Sequence record: NC_061441.1
Reading direction: 5' to 3' (one strand)
DNA: 64,000 bases
This document shows, piece by piece, positions 9,979-31,805 of this stretch. A program made the position numbers and the translations under genes. Position 1 is the stretch's first letter; every line of letters begins with the position of its first letter. Below the pieces are notes generated by a model that ran no database searches, was not told where the DNA came from, and was given only the letters and a program-made list of their open reading frames with translations.

Positions 9979-10509
9979 ATGACGGAAAAGATTGAACAGT
10001 TGGCGAAGTGGTATGACGCGGCAAAGACCGCGTTTAAGATGGGCACTCTCAATCCTAACGGTAACATTGCGTTGCTGTTGAGTATTCTGGCCCGTCTGAA
10101 TAAGTCAGTAGACGAAGCCGCTCCTGGTCCTGTGCGTGATCGGGCAGAAAAGGAACGTGCTGAGTTTCTTGACGAGCTGGCCGGTGAGGTCGATATGTAC
10201 GCTCTCATCCGCAAGCGCTTCAACAACGATCTGTACCCAGGCATTACTGTGAGCGAAGACGTGAAGGTGTATGTTGCCCTCATGGCTGATCGCCCAGGCA
10301 GTGCTGTAATGGCGATGACCTTCCTGCACCTTGCTCGTTGCTACACGCTCAAGGACATGATCATTAACTTTCTCCCGAACGGCTTCCCGGCTGAGGACGC
10401 ACTTGGCCTCACTTGGAGCATACAGAAGACAGACACTGGAAACCTGGTGGATGATATTGATTCTGTAAATAGCCTGTACAACAAGATGTATAACTCTGGA
10501 GATAAGTAA
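9979..10509 (+). CDS. hypothetical protein
   Basis: ORF with GAGG RBS. Confidence 0.65.
   Translation: MTEKIEQLAKWYDAAKTAFKMGTLNPNGNIALLLSILARLNKSVDEAAPGPVRDRAEKERAEFLDELAGEVDMYALIRKRFNNDLYPGITVSEDVKVYVALMADRPGSAVMAMTFLHLARCYTLKDMIINFLPNGFPAEDALGLTWSIQKTDTGNLVDDIDSVNSLYNKMYNSGDK
10463..10471 (+). promoter_or_regulatory. CTGTAAATA candidate promoter motif
   Basis: Exact copy 38 nt before the start at 10509. Confidence 0.45.
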
Positions 10510-11102
10510 TGGATTTATCTGCATTAGGTTACGCACCGAAGCAGTTCCGAGTAATCCCCGTTGAGAAGGGCAACCTCGTGACTGACTTCATTCAAGGTAA
10601 GTTCCGCGTTATCGGCGTTGAGTGCAACGCTCGTGGTGCTTACGGAAGCCCGATTCAAAAGAGTATTGCCCGTCGTTTCCCTGAAGTCGTGAACCGCGTC
10701 AACGCCGTTGATTACGAACACGAATTAACAATCGGTAAGACGCATTTGGTTCGCGTTCGCACACAAGCCCGTCGTGATTTGTTTGTTGCTAACATGCACA
10801 TTGCGCGTGGCTTTGGTCTGGGTCTGAATGGTTCGTCTGAGGGTCATCATAAGCCCGTTAACCGTTTCAGTGAAAAGTTCCTGACGCGAGCGTTTGAACA
10901 TCTGCTGGAGCAGTGCGATAAAGAAAACATCGCACCAGACCGACAGATTGCTATTCAGCGTTTCTATGGCGGACTCGGCGGAGTTTCTTGGGAAGAGGTT
11001 TGTGTTGTGCTCGATGCTATCTGTGAGAAGCACCAGTTCAACATGTACGCCTACTTGCCAAAGAACTACAATACTAACTATGTGCGGGGTTCCGCGCAAT
11101 AA
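10509..11102 (+). CDS. macrodomain-like protein (Appr-1-p processing / TARG1-like fold)
   Basis: KGNLVTD, ECNARGAYGSPIQKSIARRFP, FVANM and GGLGGVSWEEV segments match phage macrodomains. Confidence 0.65.
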   Translation: MDLSALGYAPKQFRVIPVEKGNLVTDFIQGKFRVIGVECNARGAYGSPIQKSIARRFPEVVNRVNAVDYEHELTIGKTHLVRVRTQARRDLFVANMHIARGFGLGLNGSSEGHHKPVNRFSEKFLTRAFEHLLEQCDKENIAPDRQIAIQRFYGGLGGVSWEEVCVVLDAICEKHQFNMYAYLPKNYNTNYVRGSAQ

Positions 11103-12266: not shown

Positions 12267-13037
12267 ATGAGCAACGTTGATAAAACAATGCCACAAGGTC
12301 GCTGGGAATTTAACGAACCAGTTGCTGCTGTCTTCGATAACATGTTGCAAAACTCCATTCCTTCGTATGACCGTATGCGTGACCTGACCTATCGTCTTGG
12401 TCGCCAGTTCGTAACTCCAGGTACGGCCATCGTTGATTTGGGCGCATCGCTTGGTCGCGCTATCGAACCATTCTGCGCTGAGTTCGGCGAGTACCATTAT
12501 ATTCATGCTGCTGACCGCCCTGAGCCAGATCGTGAAATCGGCAATCACTACTGCTGCTACGAAGTCGCACCGGCAATGCTTGAGCGTCTTCGTCAAAACG
12601 AAGTGCTGGTCAACGCCAAAGCAAAAATCAGTAGTGATTCGCTGGTTGAAGTCGATACTTTCCGCTTCGACGAGCAGGTTGAGTGCTCCCTGATTCTGAG
12701 TGTGCTGACTCTCCAGTTCACTCCTATCGAACACCGCCAACACATTCTGGAGAAAGTGTACGACTCTCTGGAGAAAGGCGGTGCTTTCATTCTGGTTGAG
12801 AAAGTGTTGGGTGACGACAACTTCCTTGACCGTTTGCTGGTAGACACCTACTACGGCATGAAGGGCGATAACGGTTACTCGCAAGAATCTATTGCGACTA
12901 AGCGCAAAGCTCTCGAAGGCGTACTGGTGCCTGTGAAAGCTGCATGGAACGAAGAACTGCTGCGTAAAGCAGGCTTCAACCGTGTGGAGTGTTTCTACCG
13001 CGACCTGAACTTTGCTGGATGGATCGCAGTCAAATAA
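12267..13037 (+). CDS. cmoA: carboxy-S-adenosyl-L-methionine synthase (CmoA-like)
   Basis: WEFNEPVAAVFDNMLQNSIPSY, VDLGASLG, LTLQF, EK, NGYS..SIATKRKALE (Arg equivalent to E. coli CmoA R199), AGF..NF; collinear with CmoA over its full length. Confidence 0.9.
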   Translation: MSNVDKTMPQGRWEFNEPVAAVFDNMLQNSIPSYDRMRDLTYRLGRQFVTPGTAIVDLGASLGRAIEPFCAEFGEYHYIHAADRPEPDREIGNHYCCYEVAPAMLERLRQNEVLVNAKAKISSDSLVEVDTFRFDEQVECSLILSVLTLQFTPIEHRQHILEKVYDSLEKGGAFILVEKVLGDDNFLDRLLVDTYYGMKGDNGYSQESIATKRKALEGVLVPVKAAWNEELLRKAGFNRVECFYRDLNFAGWIAVK

Positions 13038-13048
13038 GGTAAAACGAA

Positions 13049-14095
13049 ATGAGCGTAAGTGGTGATATTTATAACATCCCTCAACCGTTCGCCATATATT
13101 GTGGCAACTGTGAAACTCGTGCTCAGGCAAAAGTTGCCTCAGGCACAATCGAATGGGCGTCAGAGAAAGTCTGCTGCGTTGTTGCCGACGATAACGGCCT
13201 GTTCCCTGATGTGCCTCACGTCAACATCGCAAGCGTCCATGCCACAGATGCACGTACTCTGGTAATTGGCTGTGCACCGTTCGGCGGTAAGATTGACGAG
13301 CACATGGACCGCACTATTCGCAGTGCTATCTATCGTGGTCTGAACGTTGCTGCCGCGATGCACAATCGTCTGGCAGATAATCCTGAATACGTTGCGCTGG
13401 CCGAACAGTATAACGTCAAGCTGTATGACTTCCGTCATCGTCCTGACGCGTACCCTCTCGGTACTGGTGAGAAGCGCAGAGGCATTCGTCTGCTGACTGT
13501 AGGTACCGATAGCTCTTGCGGTAAGAAGTTCACGACGCTGACGCTGCACCGCATCCTGAAAGAGATTCACGAAGACACCGTGTTCTGTTCAACTGGCCAG
13601 ACTGGTTTCCTGATCAGCAACTGTGGTATCAACAACGATACGCTGGTGGCTGATTTCCTTGCTGGCGCTGCTGAGTCTTTATCTCCCGATGGTCCTGATG
13701 ATCGTATCTATCTGATTGAAGGCCAGGGTGCTATTACTCACCCAGCGTATACTGGTGGCAGCATGAGCCTGATTGCTGGCTCGCAGCCTGACTACTTCAT
13801 CATGTGCCATGCGTGGGGACGTAAGAATCAGCTCGGTGTTAAACGCGCACCTGACCTTGCTTTTGAACTAAAGGCCAATCTGGACGCAGCGGCCATTCAC
13901 GGTCTTACTCCTAAGTATCTAGGCATCAGTATCAACTTCTCCGAGAGTGGCCTGACCATCGAAGAACAAGACGCTGAGATGTGCGCCCTGGAGGACCTGT
14001 ACGATATTCCAGTGTTCGACCCGTCGCGTGATCGTATCGTCATCAAAGAGATGGCACATCATCTCAAGACGACTGTAATATTCAGGGGCAAGTAA
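13049..14095 (+). CDS. DUF1611 family protein (DgcN-like, P-loop C-terminal domain)
   Basis: LVIGCAPFGG, AAMHNRLADNPE, GTDSSCGKK, STGQTGFLI, DFLAGAAE, IEGQGAITHPAY. Confidence 0.85.
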   Translation: MSVSGDIYNIPQPFAIYCGNCETRAQAKVASGTIEWASEKVCCVVADDNGLFPDVPHVNIASVHATDARTLVIGCAPFGGKIDEHMDRTIRSAIYRGLNVAAAMHNRLADNPEYVALAEQYNVKLYDFRHRPDAYPLGTGEKRRGIRLLTVGTDSSCGKKFTTLTLHRILKEIHEDTVFCSTGQTGFLISNCGINNDTLVADFLAGAAESLSPDGPDDRIYLIEGQGAITHPAYTGGSMSLIAGSQPDYFIMCHAWGRKNQLGVKRAPDLAFELKANLDAAAIHGLTPKYLGISINFSESGLTIEEQDAEMCALEDLYDIPVFDPSRDRIVIKEMAHHLKTTVIFRGK

Positions 14096-14096
14096 C

Positions 14097-14966
14097 ATGG
14101 CTAAACATCCTCTTCGCAAGCTGTTTGAACAGCACGTAAAGAAAGAGGTCAAAGCCAAAGAAGTGGCCGTTCTGCTTTCGAGCGGCCTCGATGGTTTGGT
14201 TAGCGCACTCGCGGCGCACGATCTCGGCATGAAGGTACATGCCTTTACTTTTCAGATGGGCGACGACCAGAGCTTCGACAGCAAACACGCTGCAATCGTA
14301 GCCCAGAAAATGGGCTGGGAGTTCACGCTCGTTAAGGTGCCAGACTCTGATAGTGCAATCGCCAAAGGCTGGAAGACGTTGCACAAGAATTTCCGCTGCA
14401 TCAAAAAGCGTGATTACGAGTGTGCGTACCCTATGGTGTACTGCTACAAAGCGATCAAAGATGCAGGCTTGAAATACGTGCTTAGTGGTCTGGTGGCTGA
14501 CGGTTACTTCCTGTATAACCGAAACACGCACATTCAGAAAGTAAGCGGCCCGCACTCTATCGCTGAAAAGTATCACGCGTACCGCACCGAATACTTCCGA
14601 CCGTGGATCAAAAGCGGTAAGAAGTCGCTCGGCGTTGACGGCTATAACCCGAGCGGTATGCTGCAACACGAATTGCTGTGTGACCACTTCGGCCTTGTTC
14701 ACGTTAACCCGTGGATGCAGCCGAAAGTATTTGATTACTTCATCAAGTACACATGGCAAGAGTTAAATATGCCTAAGCAGAAAATGCCAATAACAACGGC
14801 TTGGGCAGATCACATCGCAGTTGTTGGACATCGTCCACATCGCGGCTATCAAACAGAAGCTGGAGTGCCTGCGCACTTCGAACGCTTACTGGATAATCCT
14901 GAGATCAACTTCAACGGCCGCAAGCGCATCATGGACGTGGCCCGCGATTGGTCAACGAGGACTTAA
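14097..14966 (+). CDS. asparagine-synthetase-like ATP-dependent amide ligase, synthetase domain only (CmoY-like candidate)
   Basis: PP-loop VAVLLSSGLDG, HAFTF, DSKHAAIVAQKMG, VLSGLVADGYF; no N-terminal Ntn glutaminase domain. Confidence 0.75.
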   Translation: MAKHPLRKLFEQHVKKEVKAKEVAVLLSSGLDGLVSALAAHDLGMKVHAFTFQMGDDQSFDSKHAAIVAQKMGWEFTLVKVPDSDSAIAKGWKTLHKNFRCIKKRDYECAYPMVYCYKAIKDAGLKYVLSGLVADGYFLYNRNTHIQKVSGPHSIAEKYHAYRTEYFRPWIKSGKKSLGVDGYNPSGMLQHELLCDHFGLVHVNPWMQPKVFDYFIKYTWQELNMPKQKMPITTAWADHIAVVGHRPHRGYQTEAGVPAHFERLLDNPEINFNGRKRIMDVARDWSTRT

Positions 14967-14967
14967 T

Positions 14968-15582
14968 ATGTTTGTACACATCATTGACGGTGGTATTGGT
15001 GGGTCTTATGTTGCTCACCAGTTAATGGAAGCTGGGTTTAAATGTCGCGTTCACTCTCCGAATAACAATCGTGTTCGGGCAGTACATGCGCCATACCCTT
15101 CGCTTTCTATGGGTCACACTGAACAGGAAATTGAAAAGCATATCGGTAACGTGCTTGGTACGTTTCGCGGTCTGTTCCTGATCAGTAGCTACGTTGGTTC
15201 GTTAATTGCAAATCAGATGATCGATCAATGCGGTCAGAGTGGAAACATCATCACCTGTGACGATCTCAAGTGTGGTTCAATACCTGTTGTTGCTTCATCC
15301 ATTTCTGTAAACGTCTATAAGAAGCAAAGACAACTGGCACGTATCTCGCATCGCTTGAAACACTTCGACATTGACCACGAGTTTATTGTCGCTGATAAGG
15401 CTGTGCGTTTTGCTGCTGGTTCGGAGTATGATGAGCACGATGCTCGAAAGGAGTTTAACAACAACGCCAAATTCCTTTCAAGTCCGTCAATGATTGTTGC
15501 TGCACACAAACTCGGTGTGAAGAACAGTATGTACCACAACTATGCGGGACTGGTGCGCGAGTTTCTTGAGAAGCGCCAGTAG
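14968..15582 (+). CDS. hypothetical protein, possible remote Asp/Glu racemase fold
   Basis: ATG after GAGG RBS; IIDGGIGGSYV resembles MurI FDSGVGGxSV; catalytic Cys positions appear to be Ser; fold call is weak. Confidence 0.55.
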   Translation: MFVHIIDGGIGGSYVAHQLMEAGFKCRVHSPNNNRVRAVHAPYPSLSMGHTEQEIEKHIGNVLGTFRGLFLISSYVGSLIANQMIDQCGQSGNIITCDDLKCGSIPVVASSISVNVYKKQRQLARISHRLKHFDIDHEFIVADKAVRFAAGSEYDEHDARKEFNNNAKFLSSPSMIVAAHKLGVKNSMYHNYAGLVREFLEKRQ

Positions 15583-15871: not shown

Positions 15872-16327
15872 ATGAATCTGTTTTCTATTTTAAAGCAACA
15901 GGTAAAGAAAGCGCTGTCCACCGAAGCGAATCACGAACCAGAGATTCGTGCGTTGTTCGACTGGCGCTACTCTGTTGAGATCAAAGGCCAGATGTACATT
16001 GTAGGTAAGACTGGAGCAAACACTTGCTTCTATGTTGAGCCTGGTACTGACGAGCCGATTGCGTGTTACCCTGACGCGCTGCTGGAGAAGATTGACCAGT
16101 GGGGCGGAAGCAAGTACGTGTCGTATTCGATCTTCTTTAAACGCTTCGATAGCCCTGTCGCCGAGAACATCAAAACTCTCGAAAAGGCAATGAGCGGTAA
16201 GCCTAAGTCGTACAAGAAAGGCTACTTCATCTGTGGCGTGACGCCGAAAGGTAAGCGTGTGAAACTCTATCGCTTGCAGCAAGGTCTGTCGGGTATGCAG
16301 TGGGTAGCTGTCGAACCTAAATCGTAA
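15872..16327 (+). CDS. hypothetical protein
   Basis: ORF with GAGG RBS. Confidence 0.65.
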   Translation: MNLFSILKQQVKKALSTEANHEPEIRALFDWRYSVEIKGQMYIVGKTGANTCFYVEPGTDEPIACYPDALLEKIDQWGGSKYVSYSIFFKRFDSPVAENIKTLEKAMSGKPKSYKKGYFICGVTPKGKRVKLYRLQQGLSGMQWVAVEPKS

Positions 16328-20731: not shown

Positions 20732-21237
20732 CCGAACTACCAATGTCTGCGGAGCAGGCCGAACACATCATGGCGAGTGTGTTTACTCTGGCCGGTGCTT
20801 CTAAATCCAAGCGTCGTGCGACTGCTGCAATGCTCATTCATTTTCATGACGGCTTCCCTACTATTATCAGTAGCGGTGTCAACGGTACTATGCCAGGCGA
20901 AAGCAACGTCATGGAAACTCCTGACCTGACTCTCTCGCTCAACACTGTTATCCATGCAGAGGTGAACTGCCTCAATCGCATGGAAGAATACAGTCTGTGG
21001 GCAAACGAACAGGACATTCTGTTCTGCACTGATTCGCCGTGTCCTAACTGCTTGGCGGATCTCGAAGCCGAAGGTGTGAAGACCGTTGTGTATGCGCGTG
21101 AGTATCGCCTGACTGATCATCTGGACGCATCTTCGATTAAGATGTTCTGTCTGGATATGAAGTCCGTTGAGCACCGTATGCTTCGCGGTATCGAGCGCAT
21201 GAACGAAGTTATCGCAACAACACCAGCGTCTGAATAA
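20716..21237 (+). CDS. dCMP deaminase-like zinc deaminase
   Basis: SGVNG, HAEVN and SPCPNC motifs. Confidence 0.85.
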   Translation: MRCNLTELPMSAEQAEHIMASVFTLAGASKSKRRATAAMLIHFHDGFPTIISSGVNGTMPGESNVMETPDLTLSLNTVIHAEVNCLNRMEEYSLWANEQDILFCTDSPCPNCLADLEAEGVKTVVYAREYRLTDHLDASSIKMFCLDMKSVEHRMLRGIERMNEVIATTPASE

Positions 21238-25612: not shown

Positions 25613-25916
25613 CCTGCTGGTAAAGATGTTCGGCCAGAACAAGCCATTCATCGTCGTGCGCCGTGACGCTACCGTGGAGAACGAAAAGCGTTTCGGTGAT
25701 CGCGTTTACTTCTCTAATGGCGTTAACACCGTCACTGTGCCAAACATTCAAGGGCTTGACCTGGGTGATAAGCTCTACATTGCAGAAGACGGCGATGTGT
25801 ATGAGTGGCATCCTCACTTCGAGCGTCCTTACGAAGCAGTATCGAACAACCAGACAGAAGCTCTGGCGTTTGGTCTGCATCCCATTGTCTTCCACACCGA
25901 CACACGGAACAGCTAA
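25566..25916 (+). CDS. hypothetical protein
   Basis: ORF coupled to thyA (TAATG). Confidence 0.55.
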   Translation: MKMPTPVILLKQQTRDLLVKMFGQNKPFIVVRRDATVENEKRFGDRVYFSNGVNTVTVPNIQGLDLGDKLYIAEDGDVYEWHPHFERPYEAVSNNQTEALAFGLHPIVFHTDTRNS

Positions 25917-27013
25917 TGTCACAACCACTTGATTTACGAAACCCGAACCACTACGAACTGTACTCTCTCCATAGCGTGGACGAGCAGTATATCAACCTGT
26001 GCGATGCAATCATTGCTACTGGTACGCAAGAGTCCGATGCTGGTCGCACCGACGATACGTGGACGACTCTGATTGGCGTTGGTTTCCAGTTGCAGAACAC
26101 GCACATTGCTTTCCCTGCACTGCTGTCCGCACGTAAGAACTGGAGCGCAGCCGTCGATGAGATGTGCTGGATGGCTCGCGGTGAAACGAACATCAACACT
26201 CTCGGCTCTAAGATCTGGGACGAGTGGGCAGATGAAAGCGGTGAGTGCGGTCCAATCTATGGCGAGATGTGGCGCCGTTGGCCTGACATTAAAGCGTTCT
26301 TCGACTACACGCAGCCTATGGCGTCTTGCCCTACTGCCGATGTTATTCGTGTACGTGACGAAATCCTGCGTATGCGTCAGGACGGCTACATCGAAACGCA
26401 ACTGACTGACGGTCGCATCCTGTTTGAAGGTGAGATTGACCAGTTCGCTAACGCTCTGTATCACATTGAAAACCGTTCGCGTTCTCGCCGCATTCGTGTG
26501 CAGGGTTTCAACCCAAGCTATGTGAACATGCAGGGTCTTCCTCCGTGTCACACTGAGTTTGAGTTCAACGTAACGAAGTCCACCAAGTACGAACAGGCGC
26601 AGGCCGATGTCCGCGGTCAGACGGTAGCGCAGGACAGTCTGCATATCACTGTCACCATGCGCAGCAACGACTGCCTGCTTGGGCGTCCTTTCAACATCAT
26701 CGGTTACAGTGCGATGCACCAACTGATTGCGAAGTGGGCCGGCCTGAACGTTGGCGGCTTTACGCTGAATACGACGAACACGCACCTGTACGATCATCAC
26801 CGTGAAGCATACGCTAAACAGCGTGAGCAGTGGATGACGTTGCGTGAACGTATGCAGACAACTGGCGAGCCTGTGAAATATCCTGTGCTCGAAATCTCCG
26901 ATGATGTTATAGGTCTGACAGCCAAAGAACTGCTGGACAACGTTAACATAGACTGGTTCGAGCTGGTGGACTACAGCCCGCTGCCAGCAGTAAAAGGACG
27001 TGTGACCAAATGA
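25916..27013 (+). CDS. thyA: thymidylate synthase
   Basis: KIWDEWADE.GE.GPIYG..WR, LPPCH, MRSND...PFN, HLYD.H. Confidence 0.93.
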   Translation: MSQPLDLRNPNHYELYSLHSVDEQYINLCDAIIATGTQESDAGRTDDTWTTLIGVGFQLQNTHIAFPALLSARKNWSAAVDEMCWMARGETNINTLGSKIWDEWADESGECGPIYGEMWRRWPDIKAFFDYTQPMASCPTADVIRVRDEILRMRQDGYIETQLTDGRILFEGEIDQFANALYHIENRSRSRRIRVQGFNPSYVNMQGLPPCHTEFEFNVTKSTKYEQAQADVRGQTVAQDSLHITVTMRSNDCLLGRPFNIIGYSAMHQLIAKWAGLNVGGFTLNTTNTHLYDHHREAYAKQREQWMTLRERMQTTGEPVKYPVLEISDDVIGLTAKELLDNVNIDWFELVDYSPLPAVKGRVTK

Positions 27014-28975: not shown

Positions 28976-29674
28976 ATGGCAAAAATTGCTAAAACAAAGG
29001 AAGGGAAAAAGAAAAGCGCGATGAAGTTTGACTTGAAAACGCTCAAGACTTCACAACTGAAAGGCGCTGACTACAACCCTCGTTTCATTACAGACAGCCG
29101 CCTGAAAGCACTCGAAAGTTCTTTGGGTAGCTTCGGCGATCTGTCTGGCATCGTCTTCAACAACAGTGTCAAAAGCGGCGTATTGATCTCTGGTCACCAG
29201 CGTCTGAAATCCATCGACGGATGGAAGACTCGCATTGAGATTCAGAAAGCCGCCGACCAACACGGTACTGTAGCTCTGGGTTATATCCACGCTACGCACC
29301 CGAAGAAAGCCGAGAAGGTCATCAGCATCCCGTTGCGTATCGTTAACTGGACTGATAAGAAAGCTGAGTACGCTGCGAACATCGCGGCGAACGCCCACGG
29401 TGGTGAGTTCGATAACAAGAAACTCGCCAAGCTGGTGGAGAAGCTGGACTTGACCACCATCAAGCCTCAGTTGCTGGGTCTTGACCCACTTGAGATTCGC
29501 GGCCTTCAACAAAAGCTGAAAGGTCAGGCTGCGGTTGTAGCTCAAGAGCGTGTCGGTAAAACTACAGGCCAGATGAACGGTAGTAGCGGTGCGTTCAAAG
29601 AGTATGGTACGGACGAAGTAGGTGAGAGTCTGAACTGCACCTGCCCGCGCTGTGGATTTAAGTTCGAGGGATAA
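28976..29674 (+). CDS. ParB/sulfiredoxin-like N-terminal domain protein with C-terminal zinc ribbon
   Basis: LKGADYNPR, ISGHQRLK, ANAHGGEFD, CPRCG. Confidence 0.85.
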   Translation: MAKIAKTKEGKKKSAMKFDLKTLKTSQLKGADYNPRFITDSRLKALESSLGSFGDLSGIVFNNSVKSGVLISGHQRLKSIDGWKTRIEIQKAADQHGTVALGYIHATHPKKAEKVISIPLRIVNWTDKKAEYAANIAANAHGGEFDNKKLAKLVEKLDLTTIKPQLLGLDPLEIRGLQQKLKGQAAVVAQERVGKTTGQMNGSSGAFKEYGTDEVGESLNCTCPRCGFKFEG

Positions 29675-29675
29675 T

Positions 29676-31805
29676 ATGATCATCAAGCCGCCTACTATGA
29701 AGGAAATCAACAAGCTGGATAAACCCTGGCGTGGTATGAGTTTCTTCGCAGGTTGCGGTGGATCTTCTACCGGTCACAAGATGGCCGGTATCAACATCCT
29801 GTTGAGTAACGAGTTCGTGGATAGTGCCCGCGAGTCTTACGAAGCAAACCATCCGACTACTAAAGTGCTGCCGCATGATATTCGTCGTCTGGACCCAAGC
29901 AAGCTCATGCGTTATTGCGGCTTGGCGAAAGGCGAACTGGATTTACTTGACGGCAGTCCTCCGTGCTTCACCGAAGACACCATCATTCATACAGCAGACG
30001 GCATGAAGTTCATCTCGGACATGAATGTCGGCGATCAAGCAATGACCTCTGTTGGTCGTTACTTCCCTGTGTACGATACTATGGTTCGTCCGTACGTCGG
30101 CACGATGCACAAAATCGAAACTCTGCTGGGCGCAAACAACGCTACACCAGAGCATCCGTTCTTTGTCAGACGCAGCATTCCTACTGGCGGTTACACTGAC
30201 CCGTTCTGGTGTGATGCGAAAGACGTTCAGGAAGGTGATCTGTTAGGTAGCCCACGCACTACGCCTGACATGGGACTCGACGTGTATCAGTCGCAACTCG
30301 ATCAGCTGCCGAAGCAGATTGCAGAGTGGAGCACATTCCCTGAGTTCTGGTGGATGGTTGGACACTGGTGTGATCGCGGTTCGATTGAAACCGTGAGTGG
30401 TGTTGAAGTCGTTAGCTTTGAATCTCACTCAAGCCTCGAAAATGCAATGATTGAGCAGGCGTTTGACGCGCTGAAAATCAGCAGCCTGAACCGTATCGAC
30501 ACGATGACAGCACAACGCAAAACGTTCCGTATCGTTATGGACGCAGAGCTGGTGCAGTTCTTACGTCGATTCGTATCTCAGGGTAACAACAAGTTCTCTC
30601 GTCGTCTGCCTGCGATTGTCTTCCACCTGACAGTCGAGTTGAAGCAACAATTCATTCTCGGTTGTGCTGGTCATGACTATGTGACTGGTATGGGTACCGG
30701 CTTGGCGATCACCTCAGATAGCCGTCGCTTCCTGATTGAGTTGAACTACCTGTGCTGTTCTGCATTCAACAGACCGCTGTTCGATGGTCTGACTTGGGGC
30801 GACGTTTACTTCGGCAGCCCGATGACTCCGCGTGATCGTAACAGTGCTAAGCCTCTCATTGGCTTCCTGTTCCTGCAGGACGAGCACAACTTCTTCCACG
30901 AGTTCGATGACGCTGACCCGCATTTGTGGGTAGAAGTGATTGAGAACCTCGCGTATCAGGCAACCTGTGACGTGTATAACTTCTCCGTTGAGACGGACGA
31001 GACATACGTTGCAAACAGCATGGTCGTTCACAACTGCAAAGGCTTCTCTACTGCTGGTGTGAAGGAAGAAGGCTGGGGCAAGGAAGTTAAATACAGCGAC
31101 AACAAGTATCAGCAGGTAGATGACCTGTTCGATCAGTATTGTCGTATGCTGGAAGGCATGAAGCCGAAGGTGTTCACTGCGGAAAACGTGAGCGGCCTTG
31201 TGAAGGGCGCATCGAAAGGTTACTTCCTTGAAATCATGAAGGAGTTCGACCGAATCGGTTATTACGTCCGGGCACCGATGCTTAATGCCGCATGGCTGGG
31301 TGTGCCGCAATCGCGTGAGCGTATAATCTTCATGGGTGTACGCAAAGACGTTGCACACGCACTTGGTTACAAGACCGCTGCGACCGCTGTGCCGAATGTT
31401 GTTCCGTGTGACAGCATGGCGTTCCTTGCCGATGCTCTGCCGCACATCCTGCGCTACAAGTCCACGAAGAAAGATATCATCACCTATCTTCCTGCGATGA
31501 ACGGACCGATGCCTACGATTACTGCTGCCGATGCGATTGCATATGAGACTGCGCGTTTCTCGTCTGCGGGATTCGTCGAGGACAACAAAGGTCATCGCCG
31601 TAAACTGACTATCGACGAACTCAAAGTGATATCGGGTTTGCCCTCAGACTACAAACTGAAAGGCAAATTCGAAGAACAGTGGGAACGTCTTGGTCGTATC
31701 TGTGTGCCTGCAATGACACACGCTGCGGCTAAAGCGCTCATCGAACACGTCCTGATTCCTTACGCGAAGAAACGTAAGAAGAAGCCAGGCGATATCTTTA
31801 AGTAA
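29676..31805 (+). CDS. C5-cytosine DNA methyltransferase homolog, predicted carboxymethyltransferase (CmoX-like), intein-containing; about 352 aa after splicing
   Basis: Motif I FFAGCGG, IV GSPP-C-KGFS after splicing, VI ENVSG, VIII QSRER; motif X reads LGRICVP instead of GN(A/S)V. Confidence 0.88.
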   Translation: MIIKPPTMKEINKLDKPWRGMSFFAGCGGSSTGHKMAGINILLSNEFVDSARESYEANHPTTKVLPHDIRRLDPSKLMRYCGLAKGELDLLDGSPPCFTEDTIIHTADGMKFISDMNVGDQAMTSVGRYFPVYDTMVRPYVGTMHKIETLLGANNATPEHPFFVRRSIPTGGYTDPFWCDAKDVQEGDLLGSPRTTPDMGLDVYQSQLDQLPKQIAEWSTFPEFWWMVGHWCDRGSIETVSGVEVVSFESHSSLENAMIEQAFDALKISSLNRIDTMTAQRKTFRIVMDAELVQFLRRFVSQGNNKFSRRLPAIVFHLTVELKQQFILGCAGHDYVTGMGTGLAITSDSRRFLIELNYLCCSAFNRPLFDGLTWGDVYFGSPMTPRDRNSAKPLIGFLFLQDEHNFFHEFDDADPHLWVEVIENLAYQATCDVYNFSVETDETYVANSMVVHNCKGFSTAGVKEEGWGKEVKYSDNKYQQVDDLFDQYCRMLEGMKPKVFTAENVSGLVKGASKGYFLEIMKEFDRIGYYVRAPMLNAAWLGVPQSRERIIFMGVRKDVAHALGYKTAATAVPNVVPCDSMAFLADALPHILRYKSTKKDIITYLPAMNGPMPTITAADAIAYETARFSSAGFVEDNKGHRRKLTIDELKVISGLPSDYKLKGKFEEQWERLGRICVPAMTHAAAKALIEHVLIPYAKKRKKKPGDIFK
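29964..31034 (+). mobile_element. intein (357 aa) with degenerate LAGLIDADG region, inserted directly before the catalytic Cys
   Basis: Starts C-FTEDT, block B ATPEHPF, block F VYNFSVETDETYVAN, ends VHN followed by +1 Cys. Confidence 0.92.

Follow-up and report, generated by a model that had tools for sequence, protein, structure and literature searches.

A DUF1611/DgcN-family gene in a phage 5-carboxymethylcytosine locus: a possible N-acylating accessory of DNA hypermodification

The window analyzed here is the whole of a 64,000-nt stretch from sequence record NC_061441.1, which is 100% identical to the initial 64 kb of two jumbo phages of Erwinia amylovora, pEa_SNUABM_16 and pEa_SNUABM_18 (genus Alexandravirus). 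It contains a gene of the DUF1611/DgcN family, located between homologs of CmoA and CmoY, two enzymes of a recently described pathway of cytosine hypermodification that proceeds through 5-carboxymethylcytosine (5cxmC). The gene very probably belongs to this pathway. From its fold, its conserved family residues and its fixed place directly upstream of the CmoY-like ligase, all of which are observed, we infer a chemistry for its product and propose that a functional DgcN-family enzyme has been recruited as a dedicated accessory of 5cxmC hypermodification. This overall mechanism is tentative, and we assign it a probability of about 0.45. The three genes concerned are as follows.

12267-13037, plus strand: CmoA-like carboxy-S-adenosylmethionine (carboxy-SAM) synthase, 256 amino acids; TIGR00740, 146.6 bits (cutoff of 193.3 not reached), and PRK15451.
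13049-14095, plus strand: DUF1611/DgcN-family gene, an intact open reading frame from ATG to TAA, 348 amino acids.
14097-14966, plus strand: CmoY-like amide ligase forming adenosine monophosphate, 289 amino acids; Pfam Asn_synthase, E 3.4e-13, with the PP-loop LLSSGLDG.

The reference for these assignments is the pathway of Synechococcus phage S-B43 (Yang et al., Nat Commun, December 2025; PMC12783734). In that system, CmoA makes carboxy-SAM; CmoX, a homolog of C5-cytosine methyltransferases, installs 5cxmC; and CmoY, an AsnB-like ligase, amidates 5cxmC with glycine to give 5-glycylcarboxymethylcytosine, SpCmoY acting alone in vitro. According to the authors, the ligases of other clusters must rely on amines that are not yet known; the supply of prephenate was left as an open question. 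In the window, TIGR00740 CmoA is the best NCBIfam match of the first protein, which is 30% identical to the assayed SpCmoA of S-B43. The ligase is 33% identical to the assayed SpCmoY (271 amino acids) over 276 residues and is hence full length, and its PP-loop-like motif is conserved in the alignment. The idea of a shortened ligase that depends on DUF1611 for its amine-binding half was discarded, given that SpCmoY works alone with 271 residues and the window ligase has 289. A sequence-only reading of this DNA had placed a full-length DUF1611/DgcN-like gene, with short intergenic gaps, between a carboxy-SAM synthase and an amide ligase. The Pfam and NCBIfam matches, together with the identity to SpCmoY, bear this out, and the gaps are 11 nt after the CmoA-like gene and 1 nt before the CmoY-like gene.

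The protein is a member of the DUF1611/DgcN family by its domains, its fold and its invariant residues. DUF1611_N (PF17396; residues 53-131, 66.8 bits, cutoff 22.6, E 2.2e-18) is followed by the P-loop domain DUF1611_C (PF07755; residues 138-328, 155.2 bits, cutoff 25, E 1.9e-45), both above the gathering score and in the expected N-then-C order. No DNA-binding domain was detected with Pfam, and no PHROG family matched the protein. The closest solved structure by sequence is that of DgcN (7XRJ, E 2.5e-52). An AlphaFold2 (AF2) model was built from 26 homologs, with a predicted local distance difference test (pLDDT) score of 92.5. Compared using Foldseek, this model matches 7XRJ, deposited as 'N-acetyltransferase DgcN', at E 1.6e-32 with template modelling (TM) scores of 0.78/0.81 and 34% identity in the structural alignment, as well as the structural-genomics DUF1611 structures 2OBN (TM 0.85) and 2G0T (TM 0.79). 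The window protein thus shares with DgcN, at a TM of about 0.8, a Rossmann-like N-terminal domain and a P-loop domain like that of dethiobiotin synthetase (DTBS). DgcN is reportedly the D-glutamate N-acetyltransferase of the DgcN-DgcA pathway (Yu et al., ISME J, 2023). The top NCBIfam match of the window protein is indeed DgcN (NF041892), at 279.6 bits against an equivalog cutoff of 480. Because the score lies under this cutoff and the gene is not paired with DgcA (see below), the protein is not an equivalog of DgcN.

The signature motifs of the family, GTDxxxGKK, TGQTG, ADFxxGAAE and EGQGxxxHP, are all kept in the window protein and are invariant across the 26 aligned sequences. The P-loop, GTDSSCGKK, occupies residues 152-160, with the GKK invariant in 26 of 26 members. 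Its G-x5-GK spacing is of the DTBS type, and the Mg-binding Ser/Thr of the Walker A motif is replaced by an invariant Lys. Such a loop would, we infer, fit a nucleotide-like cofactor such as coenzyme A (CoA) better than hydrolysis of adenosine triphosphate (ATP). At 57 positions, conservation reaches 85% or more in both the phage and the cellular clade described below, and every conserved charged residue is among them; these positions include K28, H105, R129, R143, R147, D154, K159, D197, D202, E209, E224, H231, D248, C253 and R258. Few positions separate the clades. Trp86, present in 94% of cellular DUF1611 proteins, is not kept in the phage clade (the window protein has Met), position 237 is Val in cellular and Gly in phage proteins, position 240 is Gly and Ser, respectively, and Tyr135, Glu273 and Phe323 are specific to the phage clade. 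Owing to the conserved residues and the P-loop, the basic chemistry is most likely DgcN-like, that is, N-acylation of a D-configured α-amino group.

The distribution of the gene ties it to the ligase. DUF1611 is present in 34 of 50,697 GenBank phage records, all from one group of Erwinia/Dickeya jumbo phages and always at the same locus, and in 10 loci of IMG/VR. These numbers, and the missing PHROG family, agree with the sequence-only reading, which had called such a gene unexpected in a phage base-modification operon. The reading frame is not a chance one, since it is kept at 58-100% identity in the 34 records with every family-invariant residue. A search of 5.8 billion proteins returned a graded series of DUF1611 homologs down to ~35% identity, and the contigs of eleven of them, from different branches, were examined. 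DUF1611 lies directly upstream of a CmoY-like ligase in 11 lineages, and in 3 more an alanine-racemase-like (Alr-like) gene stands between the two, so that the linkage holds in 14 of 14 sampled lineages. It had been proposed that phage homologs without linkage to cmoA and AsnB-like genes would speak against a role in the modification; this neighborhood survey found them linked throughout. In five unrelated contigs (L022, L027, L028, L110 and L112) the genes for ParB, CmoX, DUF1611, CmoY, CmoA and p151, a small basic protein described below, form one contiguous module. The Alr-like genes encode proteins of 314-327 amino acids and are located between DUF1611 and the ligase.

L004:5532-6476: Alr-like gene.
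L006:11055-12038: Alr-like gene.
L009:11103-12068: Alr-like gene.

In all three lineages the product keeps the pyridoxal phosphate (PLP)-lysine motif IPVVKGN.YG.G and the conserved GYG tyrosine, and this predicted enzyme points to a D-amino acid.

A control set of 80 cellular-type DUF1611 loci (35-44% identity) was taken from Joint Genome Institute (JGI) metagenomes, a scan that gave cellular-type relatives only. Homologs of CmoA, CmoY, C5-cytosine methyltransferases, the Alr-like enzyme or p420 (a family described below) were found near DUF1611 in 0 of the 80 loci. The commonest cellular neighbor is an enolase-superfamily (MR_MLE) protein, found at 39 of the 63 loci with usable flank, followed by beta-lactamase-family proteins and TonB receptors. 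The enolase superfamily includes dipeptide epimerases. These racemase/epimerase neighbors uphold the earlier remark that bacterial DUF1611 genes usually sit beside dipeptide epimerases. Among the called or scanned neighbors of the phage DUF1611 genes, that of the window included, no MR_MLE domain was reported. A maximum-likelihood tree of 134 sequences places 13 of 13 rows with a known Cmo context in a single 47-row clade (Shimodaira-Hasegawa-like approximate likelihood ratio test, SH-aLRT, 99) that contains 0 of 79 cellular rows. A library of 1.84 billion representatives holds 1270 clusters of the family (E up to 1e-3), and only about seven representatives are at least 44% identical to the window protein. 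The window protein is like DgcN in its association with racemase and D-amino-acid chemistry, and differs from it in belonging to a separate, phage-only clade with no DgcA (MR_MLE) neighbor. Its partners are instead CmoY, CmoA and CmoX and, in some lineages, a non-homologous PLP-dependent Alr-like enzyme.

The third enzyme of the pathway is encoded ~15 kb away in the window phage, where the gene set of the module is split in two blocks.

28976-29674, plus strand: ParB-like protein, directly upstream of CmoX.
29676-31805, plus strand: CmoX candidate, a C5-cytosine methyltransferase homolog; Pfam DNA_methylase, Hint and Intein_splicing.
29964-31034, plus strand: intein of 357 amino acids inside CmoX (protein residues 97-453), placed by translation and motif positions.

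The published search for CmoX relied on an SPPC motif and an Arg (R350) that replaces the Asn of motif X, and an association of CmoX with ParBc was reported (PMC12783734). Residues S95, P96, P97, C98 and R350 of SpCmoX are invariant in the alignment of the window CmoX with five other DUF1611-linked methyltransferases, and the window CmoX is 47-50% identical to the intein-free methyltransferase adjoining DUF1611 in L022. The ParB-like protein had no Pfam match at E 0.01; it is 44-47% identical to the protein preceding CmoX in L022, L026, L027, L028, L110 and L112. In a MAFFT alignment, the intein is a single insertion between SPP and C, such that its +1 extein residue is the catalytic motif IV Cys, and the window CmoX is predicted to need intein splicing for activity. 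Another intein-bearing C5-methyltransferase adjoins DUF1611 in an independent phage contig (L110:3688-5988), and in L022 an intein is found in a different gene (L022:13064-14539). Judged by all three of its enzymes, including the CmoX residues, the window system is assigned from sequence to the CmoA/CmoX/CmoY kind.

The window system resembles that of S-B43 in having homologs of all three genes and a ParB-like gene. It differs in that S-B43 has no DUF1611, Alr-like, p151 or p420 genes, and in the split module and the intein of CmoX. Neither the S-B43 paper (PMC12783734) nor its supplement mentions DUF1611, DgcN, PF07755 or a racemase. DUF1611 is thus an addition to the published CmoA/CmoX/CmoY system and not part of its definition. 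The sequence-only reading knew of no assigned role for DUF1611 in DNA modification, and none appeared in the literature searched. Because of the differences in gene set, the final modification encoded by the window is expected to differ from the glycine amide.

We propose that DUF1611 would perform DgcN chemistry, an N-acylation of a D-configured α-amino group that depends on an acyl-CoA, probably acetyl-CoA, and that it would probably act on a free small molecule and not on DNA. Its product, or the compound that it caps, would be the amine donor that CmoY joins to the carboxyl of 5cxmC. In the simplest version, the donor would carry two amino groups, as in a D- or meso-diamino acid, and would come from the host or, in related phages, from the co-encoded Alr-like enzyme. 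DUF1611 would acetylate one amine and leave a single nucleophile for the ligase; with one amine capped, one donor could therefore not cross-link two 5cxmC residues. This route would end in an N-acyl-amino-acid amide of 5cxmC instead of the glycine amide of S-B43. The parts of this proposal differ in strength. That DUF1611 is an N-acyltransferase of the amine moiety, whether before or after ligation, appears somewhat better supported than the contrary; that its substrate is a D-amino or diamino compound still free, ahead of the ligation step, is a more tentative suggestion. It is rather unlikely, although conceivable, that the phage DUF1611 clade, with the Alr-like gene in some members, marks a family of cytosine hypermodifications that carry an N-acylated amino or diamino acid of D configuration, joined to 5cxmC by an amide bond. 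The earlier suggestion, that the gene might make, acylate or activate the amine, agrees with the evidence; activation is the least favored of the three, because SpCmoY, equal in length to the window ligase, needs no partner.

The isoelectric points (pI) of the encoded proteins bear on the substrate. DUF1611 is acidic (pI 5.6; clade median 5.8), as are CmoA (5.1) and the Alr-like enzymes (5.5-6.1), whereas the window-type ligase (9.4), p151 (9.35), and p204 and p420 (about 8.9) are basic. This likeness to CmoA and the Alr-like enzymes, and unlikeness to the ligase, is a weak hint that the substrate of DUF1611, like that of CmoA, is a free metabolite. Phage and cellular DUF1611 proteins have similar values (5.8 vs 5.9), and a DNA substrate is weakly disfavored because the phage clade shows no basic shift.

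Several points weigh against the proposed mechanism. The DNA-acting, assayed SpCmoY itself has a pI of 5.8, which makes the argument from pI a weak one. The DgcN score lies below the equivalog cutoff, and the remote fold relatives of the P-loop domain are ATP-dependent enzymes that form amides, so that a different chemistry is possible. D-glutamate has one amine and, once acetylated, could not be ligated through nitrogen. The phage substrate must therefore differ from D-glutamate, and is unlikely to be the plain amino acid in a setting of DNA modification rather than catabolism; the conserved residues nevertheless differ little between the two clades. The window phage has no racemase gene, and a D-configured donor would therefore have to be host-derived. 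The acetyl-CoA dependence of DgcN is taken here from the title of the PDB entry and the papers that cite the original work. Finally, for the phage protein, both the acyl donor and the acceptor are proposals, and so is the sequence of the reactions.

The same final base would be produced if the order were reversed, with CmoY attaching a donor that has a free amine and DUF1611 then N-acetylating that amine once it is tethered to DNA. Gene linkage speaks equally for both orders, the loss of Trp86 could open the pocket for a tethered substrate, and phage pathways of thymidine hypermodification reportedly tailor amino acids already on DNA. On the other side, DUF1611 is acidic, with a net charge of about -7, like CmoA and the Alr-like enzymes and unlike the window-type ligase; no DNA-binding domain was detected; and cellular DgcN uses free amino acids. 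We consider tailoring after ligation unlikely.

Less probable still is that the protein is an ATP-dependent former of amide or peptide bonds, which would activate a carboxylate in order either to assemble a dipeptide-like donor with a D-amino acid in it or to add a second residue to the one already ligated to 5cxmC. After the DUF1611 structures, the next fold matches are DTBS, cobyrinic acid a,c-diamide synthase, pseudomurein peptide ligase and MurD, and DTBS and the CobB/CobQ-type amidases share with DUF1611 both the fold of the C-terminal domain and the G-x5-GK spacing. These are P-loop enzymes of the SIMIBI class that form C-N bonds through phosphorylated intermediates. The MR_MLE neighbors of the cellular genes, from a superfamily with dipeptide epimerases, would also suit a dipeptide product. 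However, the remote matches reach a TM of only 0.2-0.37 (0.3-0.37 for DTBS and CobB/CobQ), DUF1611 has an additional N-terminal Rossmann-like domain, the Walker A Ser/Thr is Lys in 26 of 26 aligned members, and the closest characterized relative is deposited as an N-acetyltransferase.

The invariant order of DUF1611 and ligase, the frequent overlap of their start and stop codons, which suggests co-translation, and the occurrence of the window-type ligase in exactly the 34 DUF1611-bearing phage records would all be expected if DUF1611 were an obligate partner of the ligase that binds a D-amino-acid acceptor and delivers its amine to the 5cxmC-adenylate made by CmoY. Formally, a (cytosin-5-yl)acetic acid amide of a D-amino acid is also analogous to N-acetyl-D-glutamate. 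This arrangement is nonetheless very improbable, given that SpCmoY (271 vs 289 amino acids) ligates glycine alone in vitro, and that DUF1611 pairs with two ligase subtypes, relatives of one of which occur without it in phages Y3 and pEa_SNUABM_5. Lastly, a metabolic take-over with no link to DNA modification, such as acetylation of host D-glutamate to starve peptidoglycan synthesis, would fit the conserved DgcN residues and the presence of D-glutamate in every host, but is very unlikely, since an operon position acquired by chance can explain neither the linkage to the ligase in 14 of 14 lineages, on otherwise unrelated phage contigs, nor the absence of DUF1611 from all other phage groups.

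The preferred mechanism, an accessory enzyme acting on the amine donor, is set in a locus that varies between related phages. The window-type ligase (at least 82% identity) occurs in exactly the 34 GenBank phage records with DUF1611. A strict tie of DUF1611 to one ligase subtype was considered and rejected: it holds for these GenBank phages (34 of 34), but a second subtype is paired with DUF1611 in metagenomic phages, and 35-40% identical relatives of that subtype are found in Y3 and pEa_SNUABM_5 without DUF1611. These sister jumbo phages (Y3, L025; pEa_SNUABM_5, L024) keep cmoA and have a different ligase (22-29% identity) and no DUF1611. At the place matching 13-15 kb of the window, Y3 has a 2-oxoglutarate-Fe(II) oxygenase (L025:4978-5616), and pEa_SNUABM_5 only the different ligase. 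The locus appears to follow the pattern of an exchangeable, diversifying hypermodification cassette. Day et al. (2018) listed a methyltransferase, an Asn synthase and a cytosine methyltransferase as co-present in phages AD1 and Y3 and co-absent from the related phage JA11. In Table 5 of that study, a radical SAM protein (AD1_267/Y3_272), encoded outside the window, is likewise present in AD1 and Y3 and not in JA11, and could be a further, distant component. The literature searched held no DNA-modification data for Alexandravirus, AD1 or the PaBG-group phages.

Two further genes lie downstream of the ligase in the window.

14968-15582, plus strand: p204, a basic protein; by tblastn 83% identical to pEa_SNUABM_1 and 61% to Y3, which has no DUF1611.
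15872-16327, plus strand: member of the p151 family, basic, 150 amino acids; homologs at each Cmo module sampled.

Searches of Pfam, NCBIfam and PHROG gave no match for p204, and this protein is judged not specific to DUF1611 because it is kept in sister jumbo phages with or without that gene. Homologs of p151 are found in or beside the modules of L009, L022, L026-L028, L109-L112, Y3 and pEa_SNUABM_5, and none in the S-B43 cluster. The protein has a conserved GK.G.NT motif and an AF2 model with pLDDT 88.7; it matched no Pfam family and no PDB fold (best E 0.15), and a PDB profile search was empty. It may be an undescribed core or universal component of Cmo systems. Scans of 11-17 kb for sigma-70 promoters and terminators gave counts no higher than in shuffled sequence, and operon boundaries were not drawn.

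Additional genes accompany the module in some lineages.

L009:12943-13806: 3-deoxy-D-arabino-heptulosonate 7-phosphate (DAHP) synthase, adjoining cmoA.
L026:5622-6089: chorismate mutase (CM_2), adjoining cmoA.
L109:36-317: chorismate mutase (CM_2), adjoining cmoA.
L004:3242-4504: p420 family, directly upstream of DUF1611.
L005:3242-4504: p420 family, directly upstream of DUF1611.
L009:8782-9978: p420 family, directly upstream of DUF1611.
L111:713-1897: p420 family, directly upstream of DUF1611.

The DAHP synthase and chorismate mutases belong to the shikimate pathway and would boost prephenate, the co-substrate of CmoA. The basic p420 proteins (394-420 amino acids) occur in L111 and three Erwinia-phage lineages and are absent from the window. 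They give weak hints of the B-type glycosyltransferase fold, GT-B (Pfam Glycos_transf_1 at E 5e-4 for one member; PDB at E about 0.13). The similarity is too weak to name p420 a glycosyltransferase; the family may add a sugar to the modification in its phages.

Elsewhere in the window, the product of 10509-11102, two genes upstream of the cmoA operon, matches PHROG 335 'phosphatase', whereas AD1 and Y3 have orthologs annotated O-acetyl-ADP-ribose deacetylase, an annotation of macro-domain type. A thymidylate-synthase homolog at 25916-27013 has a long insertion (341 residues aligned to a model of 264 positions), and a deoxycytidylate (dCMP) deaminase is encoded at 20743-21237. The phage may also alter the pyrimidine nucleotide pool or carry a second pyrimidine modification.

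The general logic of the window system has a parallel in the thymidine hypermodifications of phages ViI and M6, in which an amino acid is reportedly appended to a C5 handle and tailored by accessory enzymes, PLP-dependent and other, and where the cassette is likewise said to vary between sister phages. The handle there is reported to be a hydroxymethyl pyrophosphate, compared with the carboxymethyl group here, and the enzymes are said to differ too; we know of no DUF1611 member in those pathways.

Taken together, our results suggest that a small group of phages has taken up a DgcN-like enzyme of bacterial type, which stands in fixed partnership with the ligase, and that these phages carry a DNA base not yet described. 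The 5cxmC system has been known since late 2025, with one characterized end product, the glycine amide. DUF1611 marks another sub-system, ties it to D-amino-acid and N-acyl chemistry and gives a direct prediction for mass spectrometry. The poorly understood DUF1611/DgcN fold, with one known activity for its 1270 representative clusters, also gains a second biological setting. If the proposal is correct, the modified cytosine would be, to our knowledge, the first D-amino-acid-containing DNA base. It would also be the first case in which an enzymatic protecting-group step, the mono-acylation of a diamine, keeps a DNA amide ligase from cross-linking the genome. New amide-linked DNA adducts could serve as handles for DNA labeling. 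Fire blight and soft rot are diseases for which these phages are candidate biocontrol agents, and hypermodified DNA can change both how sensitive they are to host restriction and how well they can be sequenced.

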